From Tetramitus jugosus (taxonomy: Eukaryota; Protista; Heterolobosea): a DNA stretch of 64,000 nucleotides. The DNA is taken from contig OW569347.1 in NCBI GenBank assembly GCA_937625935.1, positions 62,001-126,000 on the forward strand, read 5' to 3'. Below, piece by piece: positions 1,980 through 48,057 of the stretch (the first letter of the stretch is position 1; each line of letters starts with the position of its first letter). The notes beneath the pieces were generated by a model. That model saw nothing but the letters and a program-made list of their open reading frames with translations. It was not told the origin of the DNA and did not search any database. The position numbers and the translations under genes were made by a program.

Positions 1980-4900
1980 TCAGCTTGACTTGAAATGGTG
2001 ATAAGAATGAGAGTGAGTGTTAGGCCAATCGAATATGACCATGAATACAAGAGTAGCTATCACAGCACTCAAAATGAGAGTTAACATCCGAAGAATGGTT
2101 GAGACACAGCTTCTTCTTGATGATGAAATCGTAGCAGGCGTCAGAGAGGGTGATTGTACAATGTTGGTTCCAGAAGACGATTCGATACTTGGTGCATTGG
2201 ACAACGAATCGACAGTTAGTTCCGACGGTTCGATGACTTCCTCGACCTCTGCATCTATTGAACAAACATTGGCCAAATCATTATCGTGGCATTTGTCCTT
2301 ATCAGTGACACGGGATGGACTAATAACTTCTGATGAGTCACCAAACTCTGGTGATGTCACAGAGGAAGCCACGGTAGCATCTGGCAGCACAGCTCTGGAG
2401 TAATCCAGTGAATGAAGTGAGAGCAGATCGAGAGTGGAAACCAACATGCGATTTGTTTTGGTGGAGGATATTGAGATGGAGTTGCTTTCGTAAGACGTAT
2501 CGGTCTTGTTCTCATGCCCAGCAGATGTGGTTGACTGAGAAAGAGATGAGTTGTCAATGGTGGAACGCAATAGTGCTTGAATAGTTTCAATGTCAGTGAT
2601 TGCATCTTCATCCATTCGATTGTGCACTTGAAGGAATATGCTCTGAAGAGCTTCGATCGATTTAGTCGTGTAAACACAAGAGTGGGCTCGAATAGAACTC
2701 TGGAGAGCAAGTTGATCATTGATCTTTGATTGCTCAGCTGACCATGTCAACATATCATGAATAGAGTTCCCTGAAGCAGATCGAATCATTGATTGAATCA
2801 CAGTGATGTTTGGATCGTGATAACCGCTCAATTGAACATCAACGATGCTCATTCTAATAGCTGATTGTATCGAGCAAGTATGATTATGAGGTGGATGCAA
2901 GGATGATCGAATTCTTGATTGCAAAGTGAGTATTTGTGTGCCAATATGCTCGACCTTATTGCTCGCACATGAAGAGCGTAGCAACGCCTGTATTTCGCAA
3001 CAATCATGATACTCAACCGGATGGCTCGATTGTAAACCTGCCCTGAATAATGCGGAGGTTCTGACAACAAGCGATGTGTCATGCGAGCTCATTCGACATA
3101 ATCCTTCCAAACCCTCTATCGCATATTGAATCTGAGTCATTTCATTGAGAGCAAGGGTGCACTTCGTCTGATCGTGAATGCTTCGAATTGAGCGATATGC
3201 GTTTCTGACTGTTTCGCAGTTAGGCCAATGGATAACTTGTTGCAGATTGTACAGATGATCTGTGACAGTATCCATACTTGGATATTTTGAATCCGAACGT
3301 ATTAATGATTGAATAATTCTAATTCCATTGATTGCATCTTCTATTATATATAATGCATTCGAACGCATTATTGCTTGGATAGTTTCAATTCCAGTGATGG
3401 CATCTTCATCCGTTCTATTGTGCACTTGAGAGAATTTGCTCTGCAGAGTATCGATTGATTTGGTTGTGTAAAGACAGAAGCGGGTTCGAATAGAACTCTG
3501 AAGAACAAGTTGATCGTAGAGCCTTGGTGATTCAATCTGTTCCCTAGCCTGATATCTCAAGTGCGCTTGAATTCGACAGATATCCAGCACTCCTGACGGT
3601 TCAGATGGCAGAAACAGAGTGGAGAGCTTGTCGAGATCTGTCAACATATCATGAATAGAGTTCTCTGAAGCAGATCGAATCACTGATTGAATCATAGTAA
3701 TGTTTGGATCGTGATGACGGTTTGAGTGGACCATTCGGATAGCCGATTGTATCTCGCCGACAGCGCGATCAAACGGTACTTGCAAAGAGGGATGAGTTGT
3801 TGACTGCAAAGTGAGTATTTGTGTGCCAATATGTTTGACCTTATTGTTCACATTTGAAGAATGCGTCAATGCCTGAACTGTGCAACAACCTTGATACTCA
3901 GCCGAGTGGTCAGAGAGCAATCTCATGCTTATGAGTGCATAGATTCCATCAACGGGTGGTGTATCATGCAATTTCATTTGACACAGTCCCTCCAAACACT
4001 CTATCGCATATCGAGTCTGATTCATTTCGCTGGAAGAAAGAATGCACTTCGTTTGGTCATGAATATTTCTAATTGCACGATATGGGCTTGCTGGTTCATA
4101 GGTGGACGAACGAATAGCTTGTTGCAGTTTGGACAGCTGGCATGATAGATAATTCGTGTGTTGATAAATAGGGAGCCAAGCCATTAATGATTGAATAAGT
4201 CCAATTCCAAGGATTGTATCTTCTATTCGATTGTGCATTTGAGAGAATTTGTTCTGGAGAGTTTCAATCGATTTAGTTGTGCAAACATAAGAATGGGATC
4301 GGATAGAGCTCTGGACAGCAAGTTGATCATTGATCTTTGATTGCTCAGCTTGTGGATTTCTGAGTTGCGATTGAATCTGACAGATATCCAGCACTCTTGA
4401 TGGTTCAGATGGCATGAACAAAACGGACAACCTATCGAAACATGTCAACTTATCACGAATCGAGTTTTCTGAAGCAGATCGAATCATTGATTGAATCATA
4501 GTGATCGTTGGGCTCGAAGCAACATCTGTGATGCTCATACTGAGGGCTGATTGTATCACACAAATATGATTGCAAGGTACATGCAAGGATGATCGAATTT
4601 CTGCCTGTAAAGTGAGGAGTTGTTGGCAAAGGAGCAAAGCGCTCTCAGGATGTTCGATTGTATTTATCACACAAGAAGAACGCACTAATGCTTGAATTGT
4701 GCAACAAGATTGATGCTCGACTAAGTGGCTAGATAGTAGCCCTGCCCTGATTAATGCGGAGGTCCTGACAACAAGCGATGTGTCAAGCGAGCTCATTCGA
4801 CATAATCCTTCCAGACACTCTATCGCATATTGAATCTGATTCATTTCGCTGAAAGCAAGAGTACACTCGGTCTGATCGTGAATAGTTTGAATTGCACGAT

Positions 4901-7900
4901 ATGTGCTACTCGTTGTTTGGTTTGATGAGGGAATGACTTGTTGCAGCTTGGACATATGATCTGCGACAGTATCCATTAGTAGATATGTTGCATTAGAACG
5001 CATTATTGCTTGGATAGTTTCAATTCCAGTGACCTCATCTTCATCCATTCGATTGTGCACTTGAAAGAATTTGCTCTGCAGAGTATCGATTGATTTGGTT
5101 GCATAAACACAGAAACGGGTTCGACTAGAACTCTGAAGTCGATCGAAGAGGCTTGGTGATTCAATCAGTTTTCTGTCCTGGTTTCTGAGGTGAGCTTGAA
5201 TCTGACACACATTCAGCACTCTTGATGGTTCAGATGGCAAAAACAACATGGAGAGCATTTCGAGATATGTCAACATATCATGAATAGAGTTCCCTGAAGC
5301 AGATCGAATCATTGATTGAATCACAGTGATGTTTGGATCGTGATAACCGCTCAATTGAACATCAACGATGCTCATTCTAATAGCTGATTGTATCGAGCAA
5401 GTATGATTATGAGGTGGATGCAAGGATGATCGAATTCTTGATTGCAAAGTGAGTATTTGTGTGCCAATATGCTCGACCTTATTGCTCGCACATGAAGAGC
5501 GTAGCAACGCCTGTATTTCGCAACAATCGTGATACTCAACCGGATGGCTCGATTGTAAACCTGTCCTGATTAATGCGGAGGTTCTGACAACAAGCGATGT
5601 GTCATGCGAGCTCATTCGACATAATCCTGCCAAACATTCTATCGCACACTGAATCTGACTCATTTCGCTGGAAGCAAGAGTGCAGTTAGCCTGATCATGA
5701 ATATTTCGAAGTGAGCGATATGAGGCATCCATCATTTCATAGTTGGACGAACGAATAATTTCGCGTAGCTGGGACAGATGATACACTACTGTATCAAGCG
5801 TTGGGTATGTTGTGTCCGAACGCATTATTGCTTGAATAGTTTCAATGTCAGTGATTGCATCTTCATCCATTCGATTGTGCACTTGAAGGAATATGCTCTG
5901 AAGAGCTTCGATCGATTTAGTCGTGTAAACACAAGAGTGGGCTCGAATAGAACTCTGGAGAGCAAGTTGATCATTGATCTTTGATTGCTCAGCTTGTGGA
6001 TTTCTGAGGTGAGCTTGAATCTGACACACATTCAGCACTCTTGGTGATTCAGATGACATTAACAAAGCGGACAGCTCAGCTGACCATGTCAACATATCAT
6101 GAATAGAGTGCTCTGCAGCAGACCGAATCATTGATTGGATCATAGTAATACTTGGATCGTGATAACAGCTTGAGCGAATGTCAGTGGTGCTTATTCTGAG
6201 AACTTGTTGGATCACACTAATATGATTGCAAGGTACGTGCAAGGATGATCGAATTGATGACTGCAAAGGAAGTAAATAGTCGTCAGATCGAAACTGAATA
6301 AAGTATTTTGCAAGTACATTCTCCTTCCTAGTCATCGCCTGAACACAACAAGTATCACGTACTGGGTCGGTAACATGAACGCTCATTGTTCGAATTGCGC
6401 TCTCAACTACTCCCAAAGAGTCCTTTGAGTAATGGAGTTTACGCTCCTCCAGATTGGTGATAGTCAAGTTCTGAATTGTGGATAGTTGTTTCGTATTGTT
6501 CAACGTCAACGGATCCGTCGAGCGTGAAGCTTGTATTGCCATCAGATGCTTGGATACATTTCCTAGCATCAAACACTTAGCAAGTCTCACACTATTGGCT
6601 TGAATAATGCTGGTTTGACGTTGGAGAGGCTGCTTCAGGGCATGTTCTCTAATCGCAGCTTGGAGTTGTGTAATACTTCCCATATCAAGCAAATGGCATT
6701 GAAGTTGACTCTGTATAGGCAGAAATCGATTCATATAGTTGTCTCGCTGTAGAGTTGATTGAATCGTACGGAGTGTCTCCTCTTGATATTGTGAAGCATT
6801 TACAGCACCACGCATAATAGATTGCAATCTCGAAACGGAGGTGGTTTGATCATCTTTCAAAGTGCACAATTGGCATATGAGTTTGACTCTTGAATTAATG
6901 AGATATCTTTCAAGTATTGGAGGAATATGAGCGAAAGAACAAACGGTGTCTGTTGCAGTTCTCATCCGAACTGTAGCTTGAATTGCAGTGCATCGGGAAA
7001 TGATATTAAGATTTCTGTTAGAACAGATGAACTTGTTCTGTCTCAAGATCGCCTGAAGAGTATCTATTCTTTGATGCTGGGATACTAGATCAGATTGAGT
7101 TTGACATGTTCTAATCACTCCAAAAAGAGGTTGTAGACCATGCACAGAATGCAAATGGTTTGTAAGGGCTCGACCTAAATGTTCAAGCTTGAAAGCATTC
7201 CACATTTCATAATCGGATTGAACTAATGAGAGGCGAGCCAGGGATTGCAAACTTTGTGTATCGGATAAATACTGTGTGTTCGTAGGCGTTATCAACTTCA
7301 TTGAGATTAGAGAGCTGAGTTGCCTTTGTTCAGTTAGCACAATCAAGTGTTCGCTTTTACGCTCACACATTCGAATGACTGATCTGAGAACATCATAAAG
7401 ACTAAATTGTCTCATCCTCATCCCTATCACACTTTGGATCAGTTTTATATGAGATAGGGCGCAGGATTGAGTTCTTATTACGCTTGCAATCGCACTAACT
7501 TTGGTATTCATCGTTAAATTTTGATGGGTAGAAGGATTATCATTGCCTAGAATATCTATCAAAGCGAGAACAGACTCGCGTCTTGAAGAGTAATCCACAA
7601 CGCAAATTCGAGAATGAACAGCACTCTGAACGATGGCCACACACCGCAACATATGCTGTGCCGCAGCGGTTCGATGAATTACATTTAAGACAAGTGCCTG
7701 TGATCTGATAATCTCAGTTGTTCTACACTCCCTCTTCATCAAAGCCTGGATATGCTTCATCTTGGAAGATGATAAGTCGAGGGCTAATGTGTCAGAATGA
7801 AGGATACTCTCGATTCTCATTAGGTCAATTCGTGCTAACCGAAAGGCATTATTCACCTCGTTCTTGTGCATCATGCTTTCTATCGCTACAGTATTCGCGT

Positions 7901-41238: not shown

Positions 41239-41970
41239 TTACTTGTTGTTCATGTTGATTGAAAATGTTCCATTGCTCTCGTCTTTCTGCATCTTGAAAT
41301 TGTCCAAACTGAGCCCAATCTTGCCCAACAATGAATTACCCAAATCTTTCAACTGGGACAGCATTTGATCCATCTCCTGTTTTCTCTTTTGTTCCAACAG
41401 TTCCTGCAATCGCTTGTATTCAGTCTGAGCCAATTGACTTTCCGCATTCGTCTCAACCAACAACTTTGCATCCGAGTGAGCTTCTTCAATGCGACCCAAC
41501 GACTCATACGCTTGCATCCTTCGAAACAGTGCCTTACTGTAGTGAGGAATGAGAGAGAGTGCAGTAGAGGCTTCATCGATGGCTCTATTGTAGGCACCGG
41601 TGAGAACAAAGCATGCTGCCAGGTTCGACCGTACCATGCACTCAATTTCTCTACACTGCTTATCATTTTCGTCCAATTCTTCTTCTTCCTCTCTTGTTTC
41701 TTTCACTTGTTCTTCTCCATTGTTGTCTTCACTCGATTGTTTCTCATTCAAAGTAGTATCATTATTCTTATGATCATCATCATCATCGGTATTATTGACA
41801 TTCGATAGTAGTGCATCTTCACTTTGTTCGGGATCAGATAATTGACAGAATGGAAGAGCTTCAAAATAGAATTGGATGGCACCTTCGTAATCCTTCCGTT
41901 TAAAACATTCATTTCCTTTTTCTTTGAGAGTGGTTGCTTGTTGTGGATCGATTGCTTGAATGATTGTCAT
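41239..41970 (-). CDS. TTC1: Tetratricopeptide repeat protein 1-like
   Basis: TPR motifs (LKEKGNECFK...YEGAIQFYFEAL; SNLAAC; KALFRR) and the TTC1-type C-terminus LKDLGNSLLGKIGLSLDNFKMQKD..GTFSINM. Confidence 0.88.
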   Translation of the reverse strand: MTIIQAIDPQQATTLKEKGNECFKRKDYEGAIQFYFEALPFCQLSDPEQSEDALLSNVNNTDDDDDHKNNDTTLNEKQSSEDNNGEEQVKETREEEEELDENDKQCREIECMVRSNLAACFVLTGAYNRAIDEASTALSLIPHYSKALFRRMQAYESLGRIEEAHSDAKLLVETNAESQLAQTEYKRLQELLEQKRKQEMDQMLSQLKDLGNSLLGKIGLSLDNFKMQKDESNGTFSINMNNK

Positions 41971-42063
41971 CGTTCTGTTTGGTGTGAGTTGTTTTCTCTT
42001 TTTTGTTCCTGAAAGAAATGGATAAAAATAGCACTGTGAAGCTTGAAATAATGAAATGTTTAA

Positions 42064-42076
42064 GGTGGCGGTCTAC
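42064..42076 (+). repeat. Left terminal inverted repeat
   Basis: GGTGGCGGTCTAC is the exact reverse complement of 44714-44726. Confidence 0.92.
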
Positions 42077-42079
42077 CAA

Positions 42080-42110
42080 CTCCTCGTATAAATAGGGCTC
42101 CTCGTATAAA
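42080..42110 (+). repeat. Subterminal 13-bp direct repeat CTCCTCGTATAAA x2 (42080-42092, 42098-42110)
   Basis: Read directly; lies 3 bp inside the left TIR and is absent from the right end. Confidence 0.8.
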
Positions 42111-42718
42111 ATGATTTTTGTTTGAGAAAAAAGAAGCAAGATGTGGGTCGATCAAAAAACATCAGAATCCATACACAAGAGTTAATCATCCACAATACTG
42201 TGAATTCTCGGTTACAAGCAACACTTTCGTGCTTTGTGATTTCTCTGCGGCGGAGGTTCGGGCTTCTTTATTTGGGCTAGTTGACAGGAACATTGAATCT
42301 CTGGAGAATACAAAAACACACTTGGATGATGAGTCATCCACACGTTGTCATTAAACAAGTTCTGAGTCAAAGATGCAATACTTGGTAGAGTTTCATATTG
42401 GAGTCTCCTCCAGTAGATGATTTCGGTTGTTGTGTGTATTGGTTCAGAGGATGGACGATGGACGTTTTCTTTCAAGACGCGAGATTGAACCACCACCCAA
42501 GAAGAAATAAAGCATTTGCCAAACGAGTAACGTCATCTTTCTGTTGTCTAAATCTCAGTTTCCTCTAAGCTGCGGAATTGGTGCAGTTGTAAAAATTTCC
42601 GTTGAGACTGTCTTTACAACGGCAACGGCCATCTTCCTCGGTTTAAAAAGCGCTGTCTTTTTCGCTGTTTGATTCAACTCACACAACAAATACACCACAC
42701 AACAAATACAAAAACATT

Positions 42719-44641
42719 ATGCCACGAGGCGTGCCTAAGGACGGCAAGAGAAAGAGAAAGAGAGAGACTGTCAAAAAGGATGAATACTCATCACATTACG
42801 TGGTCAAGGTCGGTCTGAAGTCTCTATTGTTGCATCATCCAACTCTTTTACCAATCATACAAACTCAAGCTCTGGAGATTACAAGGATAGCTCTTCGACT
42901 CACAAGATTTATAAACATATTTGTTTTGAGGCACTTGGAGAACAATTGTGATATCCCTCTCTTGAATCAAGGATTTATTCAACGAATCGGTTCAGTGTTG
43001 TTTGGACGCAAGTCGAAGACAAGAGACGATAATGTCAACCTCATCAACGGGTCTGTCAACATGGATGACGTAACAATCAAGCTAAGGAAGATTTATGAGA
43101 AGTTTTCCAAATCCATCAATTACGTTGCCAAGTCTCTCAATGTCAATATTTCTAACATGCTCAAGTTCACATTGGAACAAAGACTGAGAAAGTATTTGAG
43201 AGTGAGGATGAATCAATTGCACAATGACCAATCAATCCCAAGGTCTGAATACAGAAGAGTCATAGAATACATCATCAGAAAGTTGACATTCGCCACTCCA
43301 GTTTATGATTTTGTCAAACTGCCTCCAAAAGAGTTGATAGAGACTATTCCTGTGTTGATCCGAGAGGTTCGAACACTTGTTGGTGCTAAAACTGACGAAG
43401 TGATTGATGAATCGTTTGTGAACAACAACACCAACAACATGCTGAAGTTTTACTGGCATGCTCAACAGTTTCTGATTGGCAATGATACGAAATCATTTGC
43501 ATTGTTACCCTTGTCCCACTTCAAATGTAGATGCATGGAGATTGGTATAACGGAACTGACAGACATGCTCCAACAGAAGAAGAAACCAGGAGTACAAAAG
43601 AAGGGTAATGTACAAGTTATTGAACCCATTGAATTGAAATACAATCTCAAGTGTTTGAATATCGGAACAAAGAAGATTCAAATCGACTCTATCAGAACTG
43701 ACGGTATTCAAGCCTCAGTTGTTCTCAGACATCAACTCGTTGGCAATCACAAGAACAATAAGGCAAAGGAATCCAAGAAAGAAGCAAAGAAGAGAAAGAA
43801 AGAAACAAGTATGAACGAAGGTGCTGAATATTTGGTTGGGATTGACCCGGGTATTGTTACGTTGGTGAGTTGTGCAGATTCAGATGGCAAGAAGTGGGAG
43901 TTTTCTAACAAAACATATAGACATCTGTCCCACCATTCAAAAAACTCCAAGCGATTGTTGAAATACAAAGCAGAATGGAACGAAATGAATGAGAAGAACT
44001 TGGATGAACTCCATAACTCAATCAAACAGGCCGGTGTACCAACAAGTGGTCTGTTCCTTGAACACATCAATTCTGTAATGAAAGTCGAGGATGATTTGTT
44101 GAATTTTTATTGCACCCCAAAGGTGAAGAGACTGAATTGGGATAGCTATATAATGAGAGATAAGACGATTGCCAATGTTATGAATGACTTTCGAAAGAGA
44201 GCAAATGGAAGAACCATGTTAATTGGGATGGGCAATGCTGGTTTTGGTCATTGTTACAAAGGACATGCTCCAACACCAAAAGGAAAGCTATTGAAAAAGT
44301 TGAATGAGCACTTCAAAGTGAAAATGATCGACGAGTTCATGACAAGTCAGAAATGTCATCATTGCCATTCTCACATGAAGCCAGTCAAGCATAAGAGAAT
44401 AGACAAGAATGGAACGTTGAATGTCTCTGTCGTCCGAGGAGTTAAACAGTGTGCAACCACTAAATGTTTAGTGACTCACAACAGAGACATCAATGCGGCC
44501 AAGAACATGCTCCATCTACTGAGAACAGAAATGGATGGACAGTCACGTCCCGATGCCTTCAAGAGGAAGAAAAAGGTCGCAAAAGAATTAATCAAAATGG
44601 TGGAACACCTCCAAGGCTCACTCCATCAAGCTGCTATGTAA
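42719..44641 (+). CDS. Fanzor1-type (TnpB/Cas12-related) RNA-guided DNA endonuclease, 640 aa, intronless
   Basis: RuvC-I GIDPG (D376), RuvC-II IDEFMTSQ (E539) just before the zinc finger CHHC...CATTKC, RuvC-III NRDINAAKNM (D590). Fanzor1-type FALLP, IRTDG and G.GNA.F...KGHAPTP motifs. N-terminal NLS-like KRKRKR. Confidence 0.92.
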   Translation: MPRGVPKDGKRKRKRETVKKDEYSSHYVVKVGLKSLLLHHPTLLPIIQTQALEITRIALRLTRFINIFVLRHLENNCDIPLLNQGFIQRIGSVLFGRKSKTRDDNVNLINGSVNMDDVTIKLRKIYEKFSKSINYVAKSLNVNISNMLKFTLEQRLRKYLRVRMNQLHNDQSIPRSEYRRVIEYIIRKLTFATPVYDFVKLPPKELIETIPVLIREVRTLVGAKTDEVIDESFVNNNTNNMLKFYWHAQQFLIGNDTKSFALLPLSHFKCRCMEIGITELTDMLQQKKKPGVQKKGNVQVIEPIELKYNLKCLNIGTKKIQIDSIRTDGIQASVVLRHQLVGNHKNNKAKESKKEAKKRKKETSMNEGAEYLVGIDPGIVTLVSCADSDGKKWEFSNKTYRHLSHHSKNSKRLLKYKAEWNEMNEKNLDELHNSIKQAGVPTSGLFLEHINSVMKVEDDLLNFYCTPKVKRLNWDSYIMRDKTIANVMNDFRKRANGRTMLIGMGNAGFGHCYKGHAPTPKGKLLKKLNEHFKVKMIDEFMTSQKCHHCHSHMKPVKHKRIDKNGTLNVSVVRGVKQCATTKCLVTHNRDINAAKNMLHLLRTEMDGQSRPDAFKRKKKVAKELIKMVEHLQGSLHQAAM

Positions 44642-44642
44642 A

Positions 44643-44745
44643 TCCCGATTATGTAGGAGCGTTAAGGTGTCTTATCGGGAAACCATAATGTTTTTATTAT
44701 GGCTTGATCGACAGTAGACCGCCACCTTAAAGTTCATTGCTTAGA
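44643..44745 (+). ncRNA. Predicted Fanzor omegaRNA: scaffold 44643-44730 plus about 15 nt of flank-derived guide (AGTTCATTGCTTAGA...)
   Basis: Stem TCCCGAT/ATCGGGA (44643-49/44674-80), stem CCATAAT/ATTATGG (44683-89/44696-702), and an 8-bp pseudoknot TTAAGGTG (44662-69)/CACCTTAA (44723-30). The position between the nuclease stop and the right end is the usual TnpB/Fanzor layout. Both ends are inferred. Confidence 0.75.
44714..44726 (-). repeat. Right terminal inverted repeat
   Basis: GTAGACCGCCACC followed by TTAA. Confidence 0.92.
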
Positions 44746-46210
44746 TGAGACTGTCTAACCAGTCATCCAAGTTATCATCACTCTTTTTTGGTGTGACATT
44801 TGTTGCTGTGCTTGTTTTAGTTGGTACAGCCGATATTGTTGGTGGAGACTTGGTGGTGTTCACTTGTGCTGTTCTGGAGCCTTGATTCTGCACAGCAGCA
44901 ACAGAGGTACCTTTTGAATCTCCCAACAGATTATCAATGAAATCTAAGTCATCTTGTTCCTGTTTGTTATTATTCCTAATGTCAGATCTGTGATGTGGTG
45001 GTACAGTAGTCAAGTTTACAGATGAGTCAATCTGATTGAAAAAGTCGTCATCAGCATCATCGTTCCTATGAACGGTCACTCTGTCCTGTTGTTTTGTGAC
45101 GCCTGTCGATATTGTGTTTGGTGCTGTGGTTCTTTGTGCACTGACTGGTGTTTCTTTCTGTTGAGATTGAACGACAGTTGGTGGTTGATGAGCTTCTTTG
45201 GTCACTGTCGTCGACGTTGCTGCTTCAACTTGCTTATCATTGCTCTCATTTTCATCATCACTCTCTGCTAATTCTTCTTCTGAGATGTCGTCCAAATCGT
45301 ATTCGTCGTCATCTTCATCTTGTTCCTCTAGTTCCTGTTCCTTTTCACTCAATTGTTGCTGCTCAACTTGTTGTTGTTGATATTTACTATTGAGATCAAT
45401 GGATGAGATAGGAACAGATGCTGGCTGTTGATGCTCATTGCACAAGTGAGCCAACGATACACTACTCACAGTCACAAACCTTCCATTGTCACTCGATTGA
45501 TCATGCTTCTTCTTGTCCGTTTCTCCACCACCAACAATTGATGATGAATGTACCTTCATAATAGAACTCAACACACAATCATCTTGCTCTGCAAACAAAT
45601 TCAATCTCTGTTGAACAGGCAACAACTTTAACTCGTTTGCCAATTGATTCGTATTCAAATTAAACAAATCATCCGTATCAGCATTCACATTCGCAGCATC
45701 CGTATCCAATTCCCACTCTTTTTCCCATGGTTTCCTGTGATAGGAACTCGCACCACTCAAATCATCCAACAATACTTGCAAGTACCGTGCTCTCTCATCC
45801 TTGACACCAAATTTTGTCATGAGTAATTCATTATTTTCCTCTTCATCATTATCACTTTCATCTGCGTCCTGATAACGATATTCATTACTCTGAATCGGGC
45901 GATGACCAAATGCACTCTTCTCCACGTTATTGACATCAACAGTATCAACAGCATCAACAGCATTTGCATCACGATTCTGTTTGAGAATAAAAGATGGAGT
46001 GAAACGAAAGCCTCTGGAACCTCCACCTCCAACACCACCACCAACACCTCCACTACTGCTACTGCCACTCATAGCAAAGTGCTTATCACCAGCACCACGA
46101 TGTTTTTGATGCTTCTTGTTTTTAGTGTAGCTCTTGGGAGGTTTCGTATTCTTTTTTTTCGTTGATGATGCTGTTGCATTGGCACTACTCTTTGTCGTTG
46201 TGGAACTCAT
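44741..46210 (-). CDS. AVEN: AVEN-like protein
   Basis: RPIQSNEYRY, LANELKLLPVQQRLNL and terminal LDDWLDSLI resemble the three conserved AVEN blocks; likely ATG at 46210. Confidence 0.7.
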   Translation of the reverse strand: MSSTTTKSSANATASSTKKKNTKPPKSYTKNKKHQKHRGAGDKHFAMSGSSSSGGVGGGVGGGGSRGFRFTPSFILKQNRDANAVDAVDTVDVNNVEKSAFGHRPIQSNEYRYQDADESDNDEEENNELLMTKFGVKDERARYLQVLLDDLSGASSYHRKPWEKEWELDTDAANVNADTDDLFNLNTNQLANELKLLPVQQRLNLFAEQDDCVLSSIMKVHSSSIVGGGETDKKKHDQSSDNGRFVTVSSVSLAHLCNEHQQPASVPISSIDLNSKYQQQQVEQQQLSEKEQELEEQDEDDDEYDLDDISEEELAESDDENESNDKQVEAATSTTVTKEAHQPPTVVQSQQKETPVSAQRTTAPNTISTGVTKQQDRVTVHRNDDADDDFFNQIDSSVNLTTVPPHHRSDIRNNNKQEQDDLDFIDNLLGDSKGTSVAAVQNQGSRTAQVNTTKSPPTISAVPTKTSTATNVTPKKSDDNLDDWLDSLI

Positions 46211-46305
46211 CTCTCTCAATGTTTGTGTTCTTGTTGTTTTTTTGGTGATCGGGAGAAAAAATTTTGAGAAGTTCAAAAAGCGAAAAAAACAAAAACAACA
46301 CAAAA

Positions 46306-48057
46306 ATGATGATGTGGAATGCAAGAAAATACATCATGACAACAAGTAGTCACCAACTGTGCAACTCATTGTTGAGGAGACCACAGTTGATTCTCTTTCA
46401 TGATTCACCACTCTTGCGATCCTATGCCAAAAGAATTACTCTTCCCACAAGTGGATCAACAACTACAACTACAACCACGAGTAGTAGTAATAACAATAGC
46501 ACGCCAATGTCAACAATCATAGAAATGCCATCATTACCACATGAATTCACTACTCGAACAAAAATCAACGACAAGAAACCAAAATCAACAACCAATTCTC
46601 CTACTACGAGCAATCACAAAACAACAACGACAATTAAACCAAAAACCACCAACAACAACAACACTACCACTACCACTACCACCACCACCACCAAAAAGAA
46701 TGAAAAATCATCAACATTGCCATCACAACAACCCATACAAGTGTCTCTTGCAGAGAAAATGATTGCCAAAAGACATCGATTACACTCTTATTTCAATCAC
46801 GATGCTTCAACAATGTCATCGACTCATCATCGTGCCTCTTCTTCTGTTCCTGTTGCTCCTCCTACAGTCACCAAAATGGAAAAGAAATTATTGGACGTTG
46901 AAAAACGAAATGCTTGGAAACAACAACAGAATCAACAGCAGCAGCAGAATCAAAAAGTGGGAAACATTTCAAGTGATTTTTCATTTGTCAAATCAAGTAC
47001 TCATTGGAAACAATTGCCCATTATGCCACACATTCGCAACTATATTGAACGAATTCAAGGCGGAAAATATTATTCATCGTCGTCTCGTAATCGAGTGGAT
47101 CGACGAATGAAGAACAAGGTGTCTGCACCGAAATTCAAGAAAATTTCACTCAAGAGCAGTAGCCCTGTGAGTGATGATGCAAGTGGTGATGCAAAGTTGA
47201 ACAGTCAAAATGGTGCGACAGTCTTGTCGAAAACATCACGTGAAGTCATTGCACTGTACGATCACATTTTTGATAACAAGAAGGTCAAGTTTATGGCCAG
47301 TGCGTCCAAGCAGGAATCTATTCCTCATCCGCAGTATCTACTCACTGGAAAACCAATGACAACGACGACAACGACTTTAACTACGAATGGGAATACGAAT
47401 GTTAATGCGAATGCTGCTGCTGTTCACCATCATGCCAAGTATTTGCCTGAAGTGGCATTTGCAGGAAGATCAAACGTTGGAAAATCAAGTTTGTTAAACG
47501 CGTTGGTCAACAGTGGTGGTAAGGCACGTGTGGGAAACAAGCCCGGTCTCACACAGTCCATCAACTTTTTCAATGTCAGTGGATTCATGTGCTTCATTGA
47601 TTTGCCTGGTTATGGATTCGCGTTGGCCGAGAATGAAAAGTCAGAGTATTGGAACGAGTTTGTCAAATGGTTCCTGTACAATCGACACAATCACACCAAG
47701 ACACTCAAGAGAGTGTTCGTGTTGATTGATTCTAGGCATGGACTGAAGGCATCAGACTATGAATTCCTGCAGTTTCTCACTGTGAACAAGGTACAGAATC
47801 AAATCGTGTTCACAAAGAATGATTTGATACCGGGTGGTGAGTTGGCAAAGAAGTTGTATGCAATGGAGTTGGCCATGAAGGAAGACGAGGTCACATTTAG
47901 GTACACGATGCCTCAAATTCTTCTCGCGAGCTCAAAGAGCAACAGTGGCGTGCATGACCTTCAGAGGATATTGACATCGTTTATCGAGCCACAAAAAATT
48001 GCACAGACAAAAGCAAAATTACAATTGAAACGAGTCCAGGAACAAGTTCTCTTTTGA
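46306..48057 (+). CDS. EngB/YihA/YsxC-family GTPase (GTPBP8-like), probably mitochondrial
   Basis: PEVAFAGRSNVGKSSLLNAL, PGLTQSINFF, DLPGYGF, LIDSRHG, TKND; Arg/Ser/Leu-rich presequence-like N-terminus. Confidence 0.9.
   Translation: MMMWNARKYIMTTSSHQLCNSLLRRPQLILFHDSPLLRSYAKRITLPTSGSTTTTTTTSSSNNNSTPMSTIIEMPSLPHEFTTRTKINDKKPKSTTNSPTTSNHKTTTTIKPKTTNNNNTTTTTTTTTTKKNEKSSTLPSQQPIQVSLAEKMIAKRHRLHSYFNHDASTMSSTHHRASSSVPVAPPTVTKMEKKLLDVEKRNAWKQQQNQQQQQNQKVGNISSDFSFVKSSTHWKQLPIMPHIRNYIERIQGGKYYSSSSRNRVDRRMKNKVSAPKFKKISLKSSSPVSDDASGDAKLNSQNGATVLSKTSREVIALYDHIFDNKKVKFMASASKQESIPHPQYLLTGKPMTTTTTTLTTNGNTNVNANAAAVHHHAKYLPEVAFAGRSNVGKSSLLNALVNSGGKARVGNKPGLTQSINFFNVSGFMCFIDLPGYGFALAENEKSEYWNEFVKWFLYNRHNHTKTLKRVFVLIDSRHGLKASDYEFLQFLTVNKVQNQIVFTKNDLIPGGELAKKLYAMELAMKEDEVTFRYTMPQILLASSKSNSGVHDLQRILTSFIEPQKIAQTKAKLQLKRVQEQVLF

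Follow-up and report, generated by a model that had tools for sequence, protein, structure and literature searches.

A Fanzor1 nuclease gene in a non-autonomous transposon of Tetramitus jugosus with Kolobok-type ends

The locus and its Fanzor1 protein

The window analysed here is a stretch of 64,000 nucleotides (nt) from contig OW569347.1 of the free-living heterolobosean amoeba Tetramitus jugosus. At 42064-44726 it contains a transposon with terminal inverted repeats (TIRs), which carries an open reading frame (ORF) for an RNA-guided nuclease of the Fanzor1 type. The element is non-autonomous and holds a nested fragment of a pogo-family transposon. Its features are as follows, TAM denoting the target-adjacent motif and SL1 the first stem-loop of the predicted omegaRNA.

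42064-44726, plus strand: complete TIR element without a transposase, recognised from matching ends and an empty allele
42060-42063: left TTAA target-site duplication (TSD); with the T at 42059, predicted TAM (A/T-TTAA) of the empty site
42064-42076, plus strand: left 13-bp TIR, type A, starting with GG, perfect match to the right TIR
42080-42110, plus strand: two 13-bp subterminal direct repeats ending in CGTATAAA, from a repeat search and end comparison
42196-42449, minus strand: truncated nested pogo-family piece inserted at TA, with one TIR and the 3' end of a DDE_1 transposase gene
42555-42718, plus strand: start of the core common to short and long copies; probably the Fanzor gene's promoter with its 5' leader
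42719-44641, plus strand: Fanzor1 ORF of 640 amino acids (aa), no stops; TDG 327-329, DPG 376-378, E539, C4 zinc finger, RD 589-590
44630-44660, plus strand: predicted SL1; 44634-44641 pairs with 44649-44656 around a 7-nt loop; overlaps the stop codon and covaries among relatives
44643-44680, plus strand: predicted crossing pairing (pseudoknot or kissing contact) of the SL1 loop, 44643-44648, with 44675-44680; three related types of RNA show compensatory changes
44662-44730, plus strand: predicted terminal stem; 44662-44669 pairs with 44723-44730 (right TIR end and 3' TTAA) and encloses a hairpin at 44683-44702
44714-44726, plus strand: right 13-bp TIR, ending with CC, perfect match to the left TIR
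44727-44730: right TTAA duplication; the prediction assigns it to the RNA scaffold and not to the guide
44731-44745, plus strand: predicted native guide of ~15 nt, drawn from the host flank; length taken from PMC13565253

The first-pass annotation of this DNA had described an uninterrupted 640-aa ORF with three RuvC residues, a four-cysteine zinc finger and basic tracts, and all of these are present. The catalytic triad consists of D376 in GIDPG, E539 in IDEFMTS and D590 in NRDINAA, and the zinc-finger cysteines are C546, C549, C578 and C583. Inspection of the sequence places the basic tracts at the N-terminus, at residues ~350-361 and near the C-terminus. The Fanzor/TnpB motif, given in PMC3627910 as D-X(125-275)-[TS][TS]-X-X-C4 zinc finger-X(5-50)-RD, is found as D376, T542-S543, C546/549/578/583 and R589-D590. 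The Fanzor lineage is characterised by DPG at RuvC-I and by a catalytic E six residues ahead of the zinc finger (PMC10711439, PMC13565253). Here D376-P377-G378 is present, and E539 is followed by six residues and then C546. The DPG, alternative-E and TDG signatures have all been described for Fanzors (PMC10711439). T327-D328-G329 is located in the WED domain, and the length of 640 aa lies within the Fanzor1 range of 600-700.

The assignment to Fanzor1 was borne out by profile and structure searches, in which the three solved Fanzor1s, with their WED/REC/RuvC/TNB fold, were the top matches. The protein matched PF07282 (E 6e-10), and a single-sequence search reached SpuFz1 at E 5e-14. With a profile of 95 sequences, the E values were 5e-100 for SpuFz1, 2e-79 for PpFz1 and 6e-69 for GtFz1; the same profile matched mimivirus Fanzor2 at E 3e-10 only, in the C-terminal region. 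The predicted structure (pLDDT 91) was compared with Foldseek. The template modelling (TM) scores were 0.61-0.69 against the three Fanzor1 structures, SpuFz1 being the best (0.69), and at most 0.33 for the remaining top matches (Cas12, TnpB and Fanzor2). Close relatives are few. They show 43-98% identity and come from metagenomes or sequencing runs, and the next tier lies at ~25-35%; a metagenome scan with the single protein as query gave one near-identical fragment. The protein is a Fanzor1 in a distinct clade. Membership of the Fanzor2/IS607EU group was rejected, because the protein has neither a TnpB-like size and fold nor a serine recombinase partner. No serine recombinase was found in the element, the left part of which holds only the pogo fragment; it is therefore not an IS607 element. 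A literature search for Fanzor together with Tetramitus found no paper.

Perfect 13-bp TIRs with TTAA on both sides had also been noted, and the same ends bound several copies with unrelated flanks. Together with TTAA and one flank base, the TIRs form a perfect inverted repeat of 18 nt (42059-42076 against 44714-44731). That this is a complete TIR transposon, as had been proposed, is supported by the multi-copy ends and by an empty allele with a single TTAA.

Family copies, mosaicism and carrier

Genome-wide searches were made on the T. jugosus assembly of 26,350,207 bp. They found about 20 near-full stop-free ORFs of 66-98% identity, in addition to fragments and broken copies. Several of the copies have the same ends in different flanks, for which the first-pass annotation had proposed searching. 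The D-E-D triad and all four cysteines are intact in 18 of the 19 loci examined. The ratio of nonsynonymous to synonymous divergence (dN/dS) relative to the window copy is 0.14-0.27, and it stays at 0.14-0.19 at dS 0.3-1.6; these ratios indicate purifying selection on the Fanzor protein. In some pairs the ORFs are identical except for 2-7 nt, which means that transposition has been recent. The locus had been regarded as young and probably active. This holds at the family level, with its near-identical copies and purifying selection, but the window copy is not the newest, because it differs from its nearest sibling at ~29 sites (~2%) and shares its right junction with a soil contig.

Divergence from the window copy is distributed unevenly along the ORF. 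Copies L008-L013 are ~18% divergent in the first half and ~1% in the second; in L014, L016 and L018 the pattern is the opposite, and L030 is ~35% divergent save for the last 240 nt. The C-terminus and the RNA region are near-identical among many otherwise divergent copies. Judged from these patterns, the Fanzor copies are recombining mosaics. At least three types of TIR flank the same gene. Right ends of type B correspond to the native end of a distant Fanzor on contig 32, and there the 3' arm finds the sequence that it pairs with. The common copies of type B have this arm fused, at the hairpin that the two types share, to the 5' half of type A, and their RNA would therefore be chimeric. The contig-32 element (2812-4985; L040/L041/L057) is compact (2.2 kb), with a Fanzor of 40-45% identity between native type B ends. 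Its SL1 is different and has a GCGA tetraloop, and the locus is present in run SRR7962542 too.

The long copies have 1.2-1.9 kb of other cargo upstream of the core start (window position 42555). Most of them carry a fragment of VPS35, which is 97-99% identical to the host gene on contig 22 and shows copy-specific internal deletions. The window copy has no VPS35 piece and contains the nested pogo fragment instead. The left parts of six long copies (L014, L015, L018, L049, L050, L053) also show tandem 135-nt duplications, as well as F-box-like and chromodomain-like fragments, recognised by eye and without Pfam support. Short or deleted copies (L074, L060, L062, L043, L042, L044) retain the right end, some with the whole predicted scaffold; the latter could act as guide-only "ghost" loci. 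Metagenomic relatives of 67-69% identity (L045:4440-4560, L047:3780-3900) have another 3' end and no GG..CC/TTAA termini, and weak Fanzor matches on T. jugosus contigs 48, 7 and 26 have yet other tails. More than one carrier has been used by the clade.

Every end type in the family begins with GG and ends with CC inside TTAA. The Kolobok superfamily, which is known from Naegleria, is recognised by a TTAA duplication and 5'-RR..YY-3' termini, unlike piggyBac (PMC9587614), and the duplication and termini found here agree with this signature. The ends are thus of Kolobok type, although membership of the superfamily is not established, and the element probably represents a new carrier superfamily for Fanzor. 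Kolobok is missing from the Fanzor carriers in the available parts of a 2026 review and of the primary surveys (PMC13565253, PMC10711439, PMC10530073, PMC3627910). A relaxed left-end pattern matched 19 times in the genome; all 19 belonged to the Fanzor family, and no Kolobok transposase, an enzyme of the DDD/E kind with a C/DxxH signature, was found between such ends. A search with PF20700 was blank, and its control was equally silent, so that it is uninformative on a Kolobok transposase. The CGTATAAA repeat motif is common to every left-end type, and the direct repeats are probably binding sites of the transposase.

Several candidate mobilisers were rejected. The termini of piggyBac are CC..GG; the GG..CC termini here do not fit that superfamily. 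Two piggyBac-like families of two copies each have different ends and flanks; these near-identical pairs (L085/L086 on contigs 39 and 18, L087/L088 on contigs 30 and 18) are flanked by AAAT and ATAT, not TTAA. A third piggyBac-like element, on contig 34, has no TTAAGG/CCTTAA ends in the stretch examined. Around the P-like transposases on contigs 8 and 11, neither TTAAGG nor CCTTAA occurs within 6.5 kb. Their ORFs (L090, 951 aa; L091, 1118 aa) are 65% alike in DNA, and their ends were not found in the stretches examined. The pogo transposase was rejected as well, because the nested piece at 42196-42449 comes from a separate element that inserts at TA and has TIRs of its own. This piece is 95% identical to a short copy on contig 45, a 380-bp non-autonomous derivative (L063:342-721), and 91% to a full copy on contig 28 (L067:942-2672). 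The latter is intact, with a 515-aa transposase and 27-bp TIRs inside TA, and has a second copy on contig 14.

Predicted omegaRNA, target site and empty alleles

The region 44630-44730 is predicted to fold with -30.6 kcal/mol, at z -3.1 relative to shuffles. A structured tail had been noted here; it does fold better than shuffles, but it starts at ~44630, about 12 nt before the 44643 given earlier, and overlaps the stop codon. Three relatives share the fold, two of them with z below -3, and show double-sided changes in the first stem. This covariation spans relatives at 60-77% protein identity. Sequence conservation among the copies stops exactly after TTAA. The predicted SL1 is like that of the solved Fanzor1 RNAs, which is 7 bp long (PMC11423790), and the TSD lies inside the Fanzor RNA scaffold (PMC10711439); the guide is therefore placed from 44731 onward. 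An Rfam search of the RNA region gave no match.

Over 5-6 nt, the SL1 loop could also pair with 44675-44680. This complementarity is kept in four RNA types by two-sided changes, and no loop fits the partner of another type better than its own (shuffle p 0.004, 0.05, 0.03 and 0.26). It is missing in a fifth, more distant RNA type, that of contig 32. Two of the eight rows are out of register in the automatic RNA alignment, which therefore undercounts pairs; a hand-registered alignment was used as a check. Since the loop helix would cross the terminal stem, it would form a pseudoknot. Published Fanzor1 omegaRNAs have none (PMC10432273, PMC10711439). With only four independent sequence types, the chances that the pseudoknot is real seem about even.

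TTAA is present at all 24 left ends and at 38 of 39 right ends, and the flanks beyond it are unrelated. The base preceding the left TTAA is A/T in 23 of the 24 copies, compared with 22 of 39 when right ends are read inward (Fisher p 6e-4) and with a window background of 61% (p 1e-4). The element's own end puts C at this position (CC-TTAA). In the right flanks, G directly follows TTAA in 16 of 39. With TTAA alone as the TAM, the guide would direct cutting of its own filled site. The bias seen across copies favours a TAM of A/T-TTAA, which would spare the filled site CC-TTAA. In Spu-1, the TAM comprises an upstream CA and the TA target-site duplication (PMC10432273). Protein, scaffold, guide and TAM had been thought readable from one copy; the TAM needs the bias among many copies, and the predicted scaffold starts earlier and includes the 3' TTAA. 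No second perfect TAM-plus-guide site for the window copy is present in the assembly. Two loci have a non-TTAA end on one side, TTGG on the right in L020 (contig 24) and TCAA on the left in L046, possibly as non-canonical insertion sites.

The element occupies a gap of ~100 nt between two minus-strand host ORFs, and an insertion inside an intron of the TPR gene was dropped for this reason. One neighbour is a 527-aa gene (44741-46324, minus strand), whose stop codon is 10 nt from the element and is overlapped by the predicted guide; its C-terminal motif, which has no Pfam match, presumably resembles the Aven family. The other is the TPR gene (41239-41970, minus strand), which we take to be TTC1-like. 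The element is ~90 nt upstream of its start, and its promoter could be affected.

In a contig from run X1, 42057 is joined to 44733 via a single TTAA, at a depth similar to that of other variants present on one haplotype. This means that the insertion is heterozygous and that TTAA is a duplication. A TTAA duplication is the simplest reading; a TA duplication or a blunt insertion would leave an identical empty site. X1 is not independent, because it is probably the sequenced culture. For the T. jugosus assembly paTetJugo1.1, a second haplotype (GCA_937658345.1) is deposited (PMC11106597). The X1 empty allele lacks the first two guide-matching bases, whereas that of groundwater run X3 has an altered TAM and an intact guide match. 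Both would escape the predicted ribonucleoprotein (RNP), which, with two alleles, is suggestive only. A soil contig from run X15 has a right junction identical to that of the window copy, and run X8 contains the element in other flanks; the element is therefore mobile across strains.

Proposed mechanism and comparison with known systems

We consider it probable that the locus is a non-autonomous cut-and-paste transposon with Kolobok-type ends and a catalytically intact Fanzor1, whose omegaRNA-guided RNP cuts the empty allele or the excised site, so that repair from the homologue copies the element back. The RNA boundaries, the TAM, this cleavage and the copy-back by homologous repair are modelled on characterised Fanzor1s. 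A transcript running from ~44630 through the right end into the flank would give the omegaRNA, its last stem including the 3' TTAA and its guide beginning at 44731. The RNP would recognise A/T-TTAA followed by a guide match, that is, the empty allele or the site left by excision, and would spare the filled site, which reads CC-TTAA. Other Fanzor1s cut 14-21 nt past the TAM (PMC10432273); such a cut would hit the last codons of the neighbouring 527-aa gene. Repair from the filled homologue would copy the element back (homing or drive), and template switches in gap repair might lead to mosaic ORFs, swapped ends and captured host fragments. Empty alleles would persist where TAM or seed is mismatched. 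The element itself would be mobilised by a transposase acting in trans, probably a Kolobok-like one.

Several points weigh against this proposal. No mobilising transposase was found, and none of the copies examined has an intact one. The empty alleles are two only, and the short intergenic gap that holds them is polymorphic in any case, with a 3-nt indel 2 nt upstream of TTAA. All four runs (X1, X3, X8, X15) are represented by contigs, which reveal neither the ends nor the levels of RNAs. Homing is documented for bacterial TnpB and for no Fanzor (PMC10432273). One left end has C before TTAA, and the flank asymmetry could come from an orientation preference of the transposase.

The last two points lead to another reading, which seems unlikely: an active nuclease with a TTAA-only TAM, the flank biases (A/T upstream, G downstream) coming from the transposase and self-cutting being avoided by low expression or otherwise. 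GtFz1 has such a TAM (PMC11423790), and the downstream G is a bias of its own that TAM selection alone does not directly explain. A TTAA-only TAM would make each filled site a perfect target of its own guide, and a symmetric transposase predicts equal composition on both sides, which the flank counts reject. It is rather improbable, too, that the RNP aids the element by binding and not by drive, whether by guiding or protecting the donor site, by assisting the trans-acting transposase, or by a repair confined to excised sites on the sister chromatid, in which homologous empty alleles are not converted. The host role of Fanzors is unsettled (PMC10432273), the culture run still shows the insertion in the heterozygous state, and purifying selection shows a function but not which one; against this, the three catalytic residues are retained in nearly all copies and both observed empty alleles fail the TAM-plus-guide match. 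A neutral passenger, kept intact merely by youth, is very improbable and is largely refuted by the selection signal: several copies are near-identical and broken ones exist, but the low dN/dS persists to high dS, the RNA stems covary among relatives, and the C-terminus and RNA region stay near-identical in otherwise divergent copies.

A bolder form of the homologue-repair proposal is possible but doubtful. In it, a Kolobok-mobilised, gene-capturing Fanzor1 would be driving through a diploid amoeba, with a retained pseudoknot, a self-immune A/T-TTAA TAM, repair-shuffled ORFs, ends and cargo, and only guide-resistant empty alleles surviving. If true, it would be the first population-genomic evidence for Fanzor homing in a eukaryotic host.

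Although elements of this kind are known, the host lineage, the probable carrier and the end-swapping with cargo are new, as is a setting where existing data allow a test of Fanzor homing. Fanzors are recognised as programmable nucleases, but what they do for their hosts is a standing question (PMC10432273). T. jugosus is a culturable amoeba with both haplotypes public. It has ~20 intact copies and at least one insertion in the heterozygous state, close to 40 of its natural guides can be read, and a purging of non-resistant empty alleles would be directly countable in it. This distant heterolobosean clade, whose identity to other Fanzors is about 20-30%, is also an editor candidate with a predicted AT-rich TAM, and its natural scaffold variants, including the end-swapped chimeras, could reveal which RNA parts matter.

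Among known systems, SpuFz1 of Spizellomyces punctatus (PDB 8GKH) and its element Spu-1 (PMC10432273) are alike in fold (TM 0.69), in size, in ~19-20 intact copies, in a transposase-less TIR element, in TAM-extending bases upstream of the left TSD and in deleted derivatives keeping the RNA end. The two proteins share ~18% identity in the structural alignment, and the site is TTAA here and CA-TA in Spu-1. The Tetramitus family differs further by its 13-bp GG..CC TIRs of at least three types, its host-gene cargo and a predicted scaffold of ~100 nt, in which a helix may cross the terminal stem; the RNA of SpuFz1 is free of pseudoknots. GtFz1 of Guillardia theta (PDB 9CER) shares the Fanzor1 fold (TM 0.61) and a TTAA-containing TAM. 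Its loci have no inverted repeats, its RNA is 150 nt long and its third catalytic residue is N, whereas the Tetramitus copy has TIRs, a TSD and the canonical D590.

With Kolobok (PMC9587614), which is present in the related heterolobosean Naegleria, the family shares the TTAA duplication and the RR..YY termini, but no Kolobok transposase was found in or near the Tetramitus elements. The VPS35 fragment in ~20 sibling copies resembles the cargo of Pack-TYPE transposons (Pack-MULE and kin), as the available part of PMC8903248 describes them; the Tetramitus element also encodes its own RNA-guided nuclease, and the window copy is without VPS35. NlovFz2 of Naegleria lovaniensis comes from the same host group, and the DPG and alternative-E RuvC signature is shared with Fanzor2. 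Compared with mimivirus Fanzor2 (9B0L), the match is C-terminal only (E 3e-10) and the TM score is 0.22; the Tetramitus protein is a 640-aa Fanzor1 with TDG and no serine recombinase.

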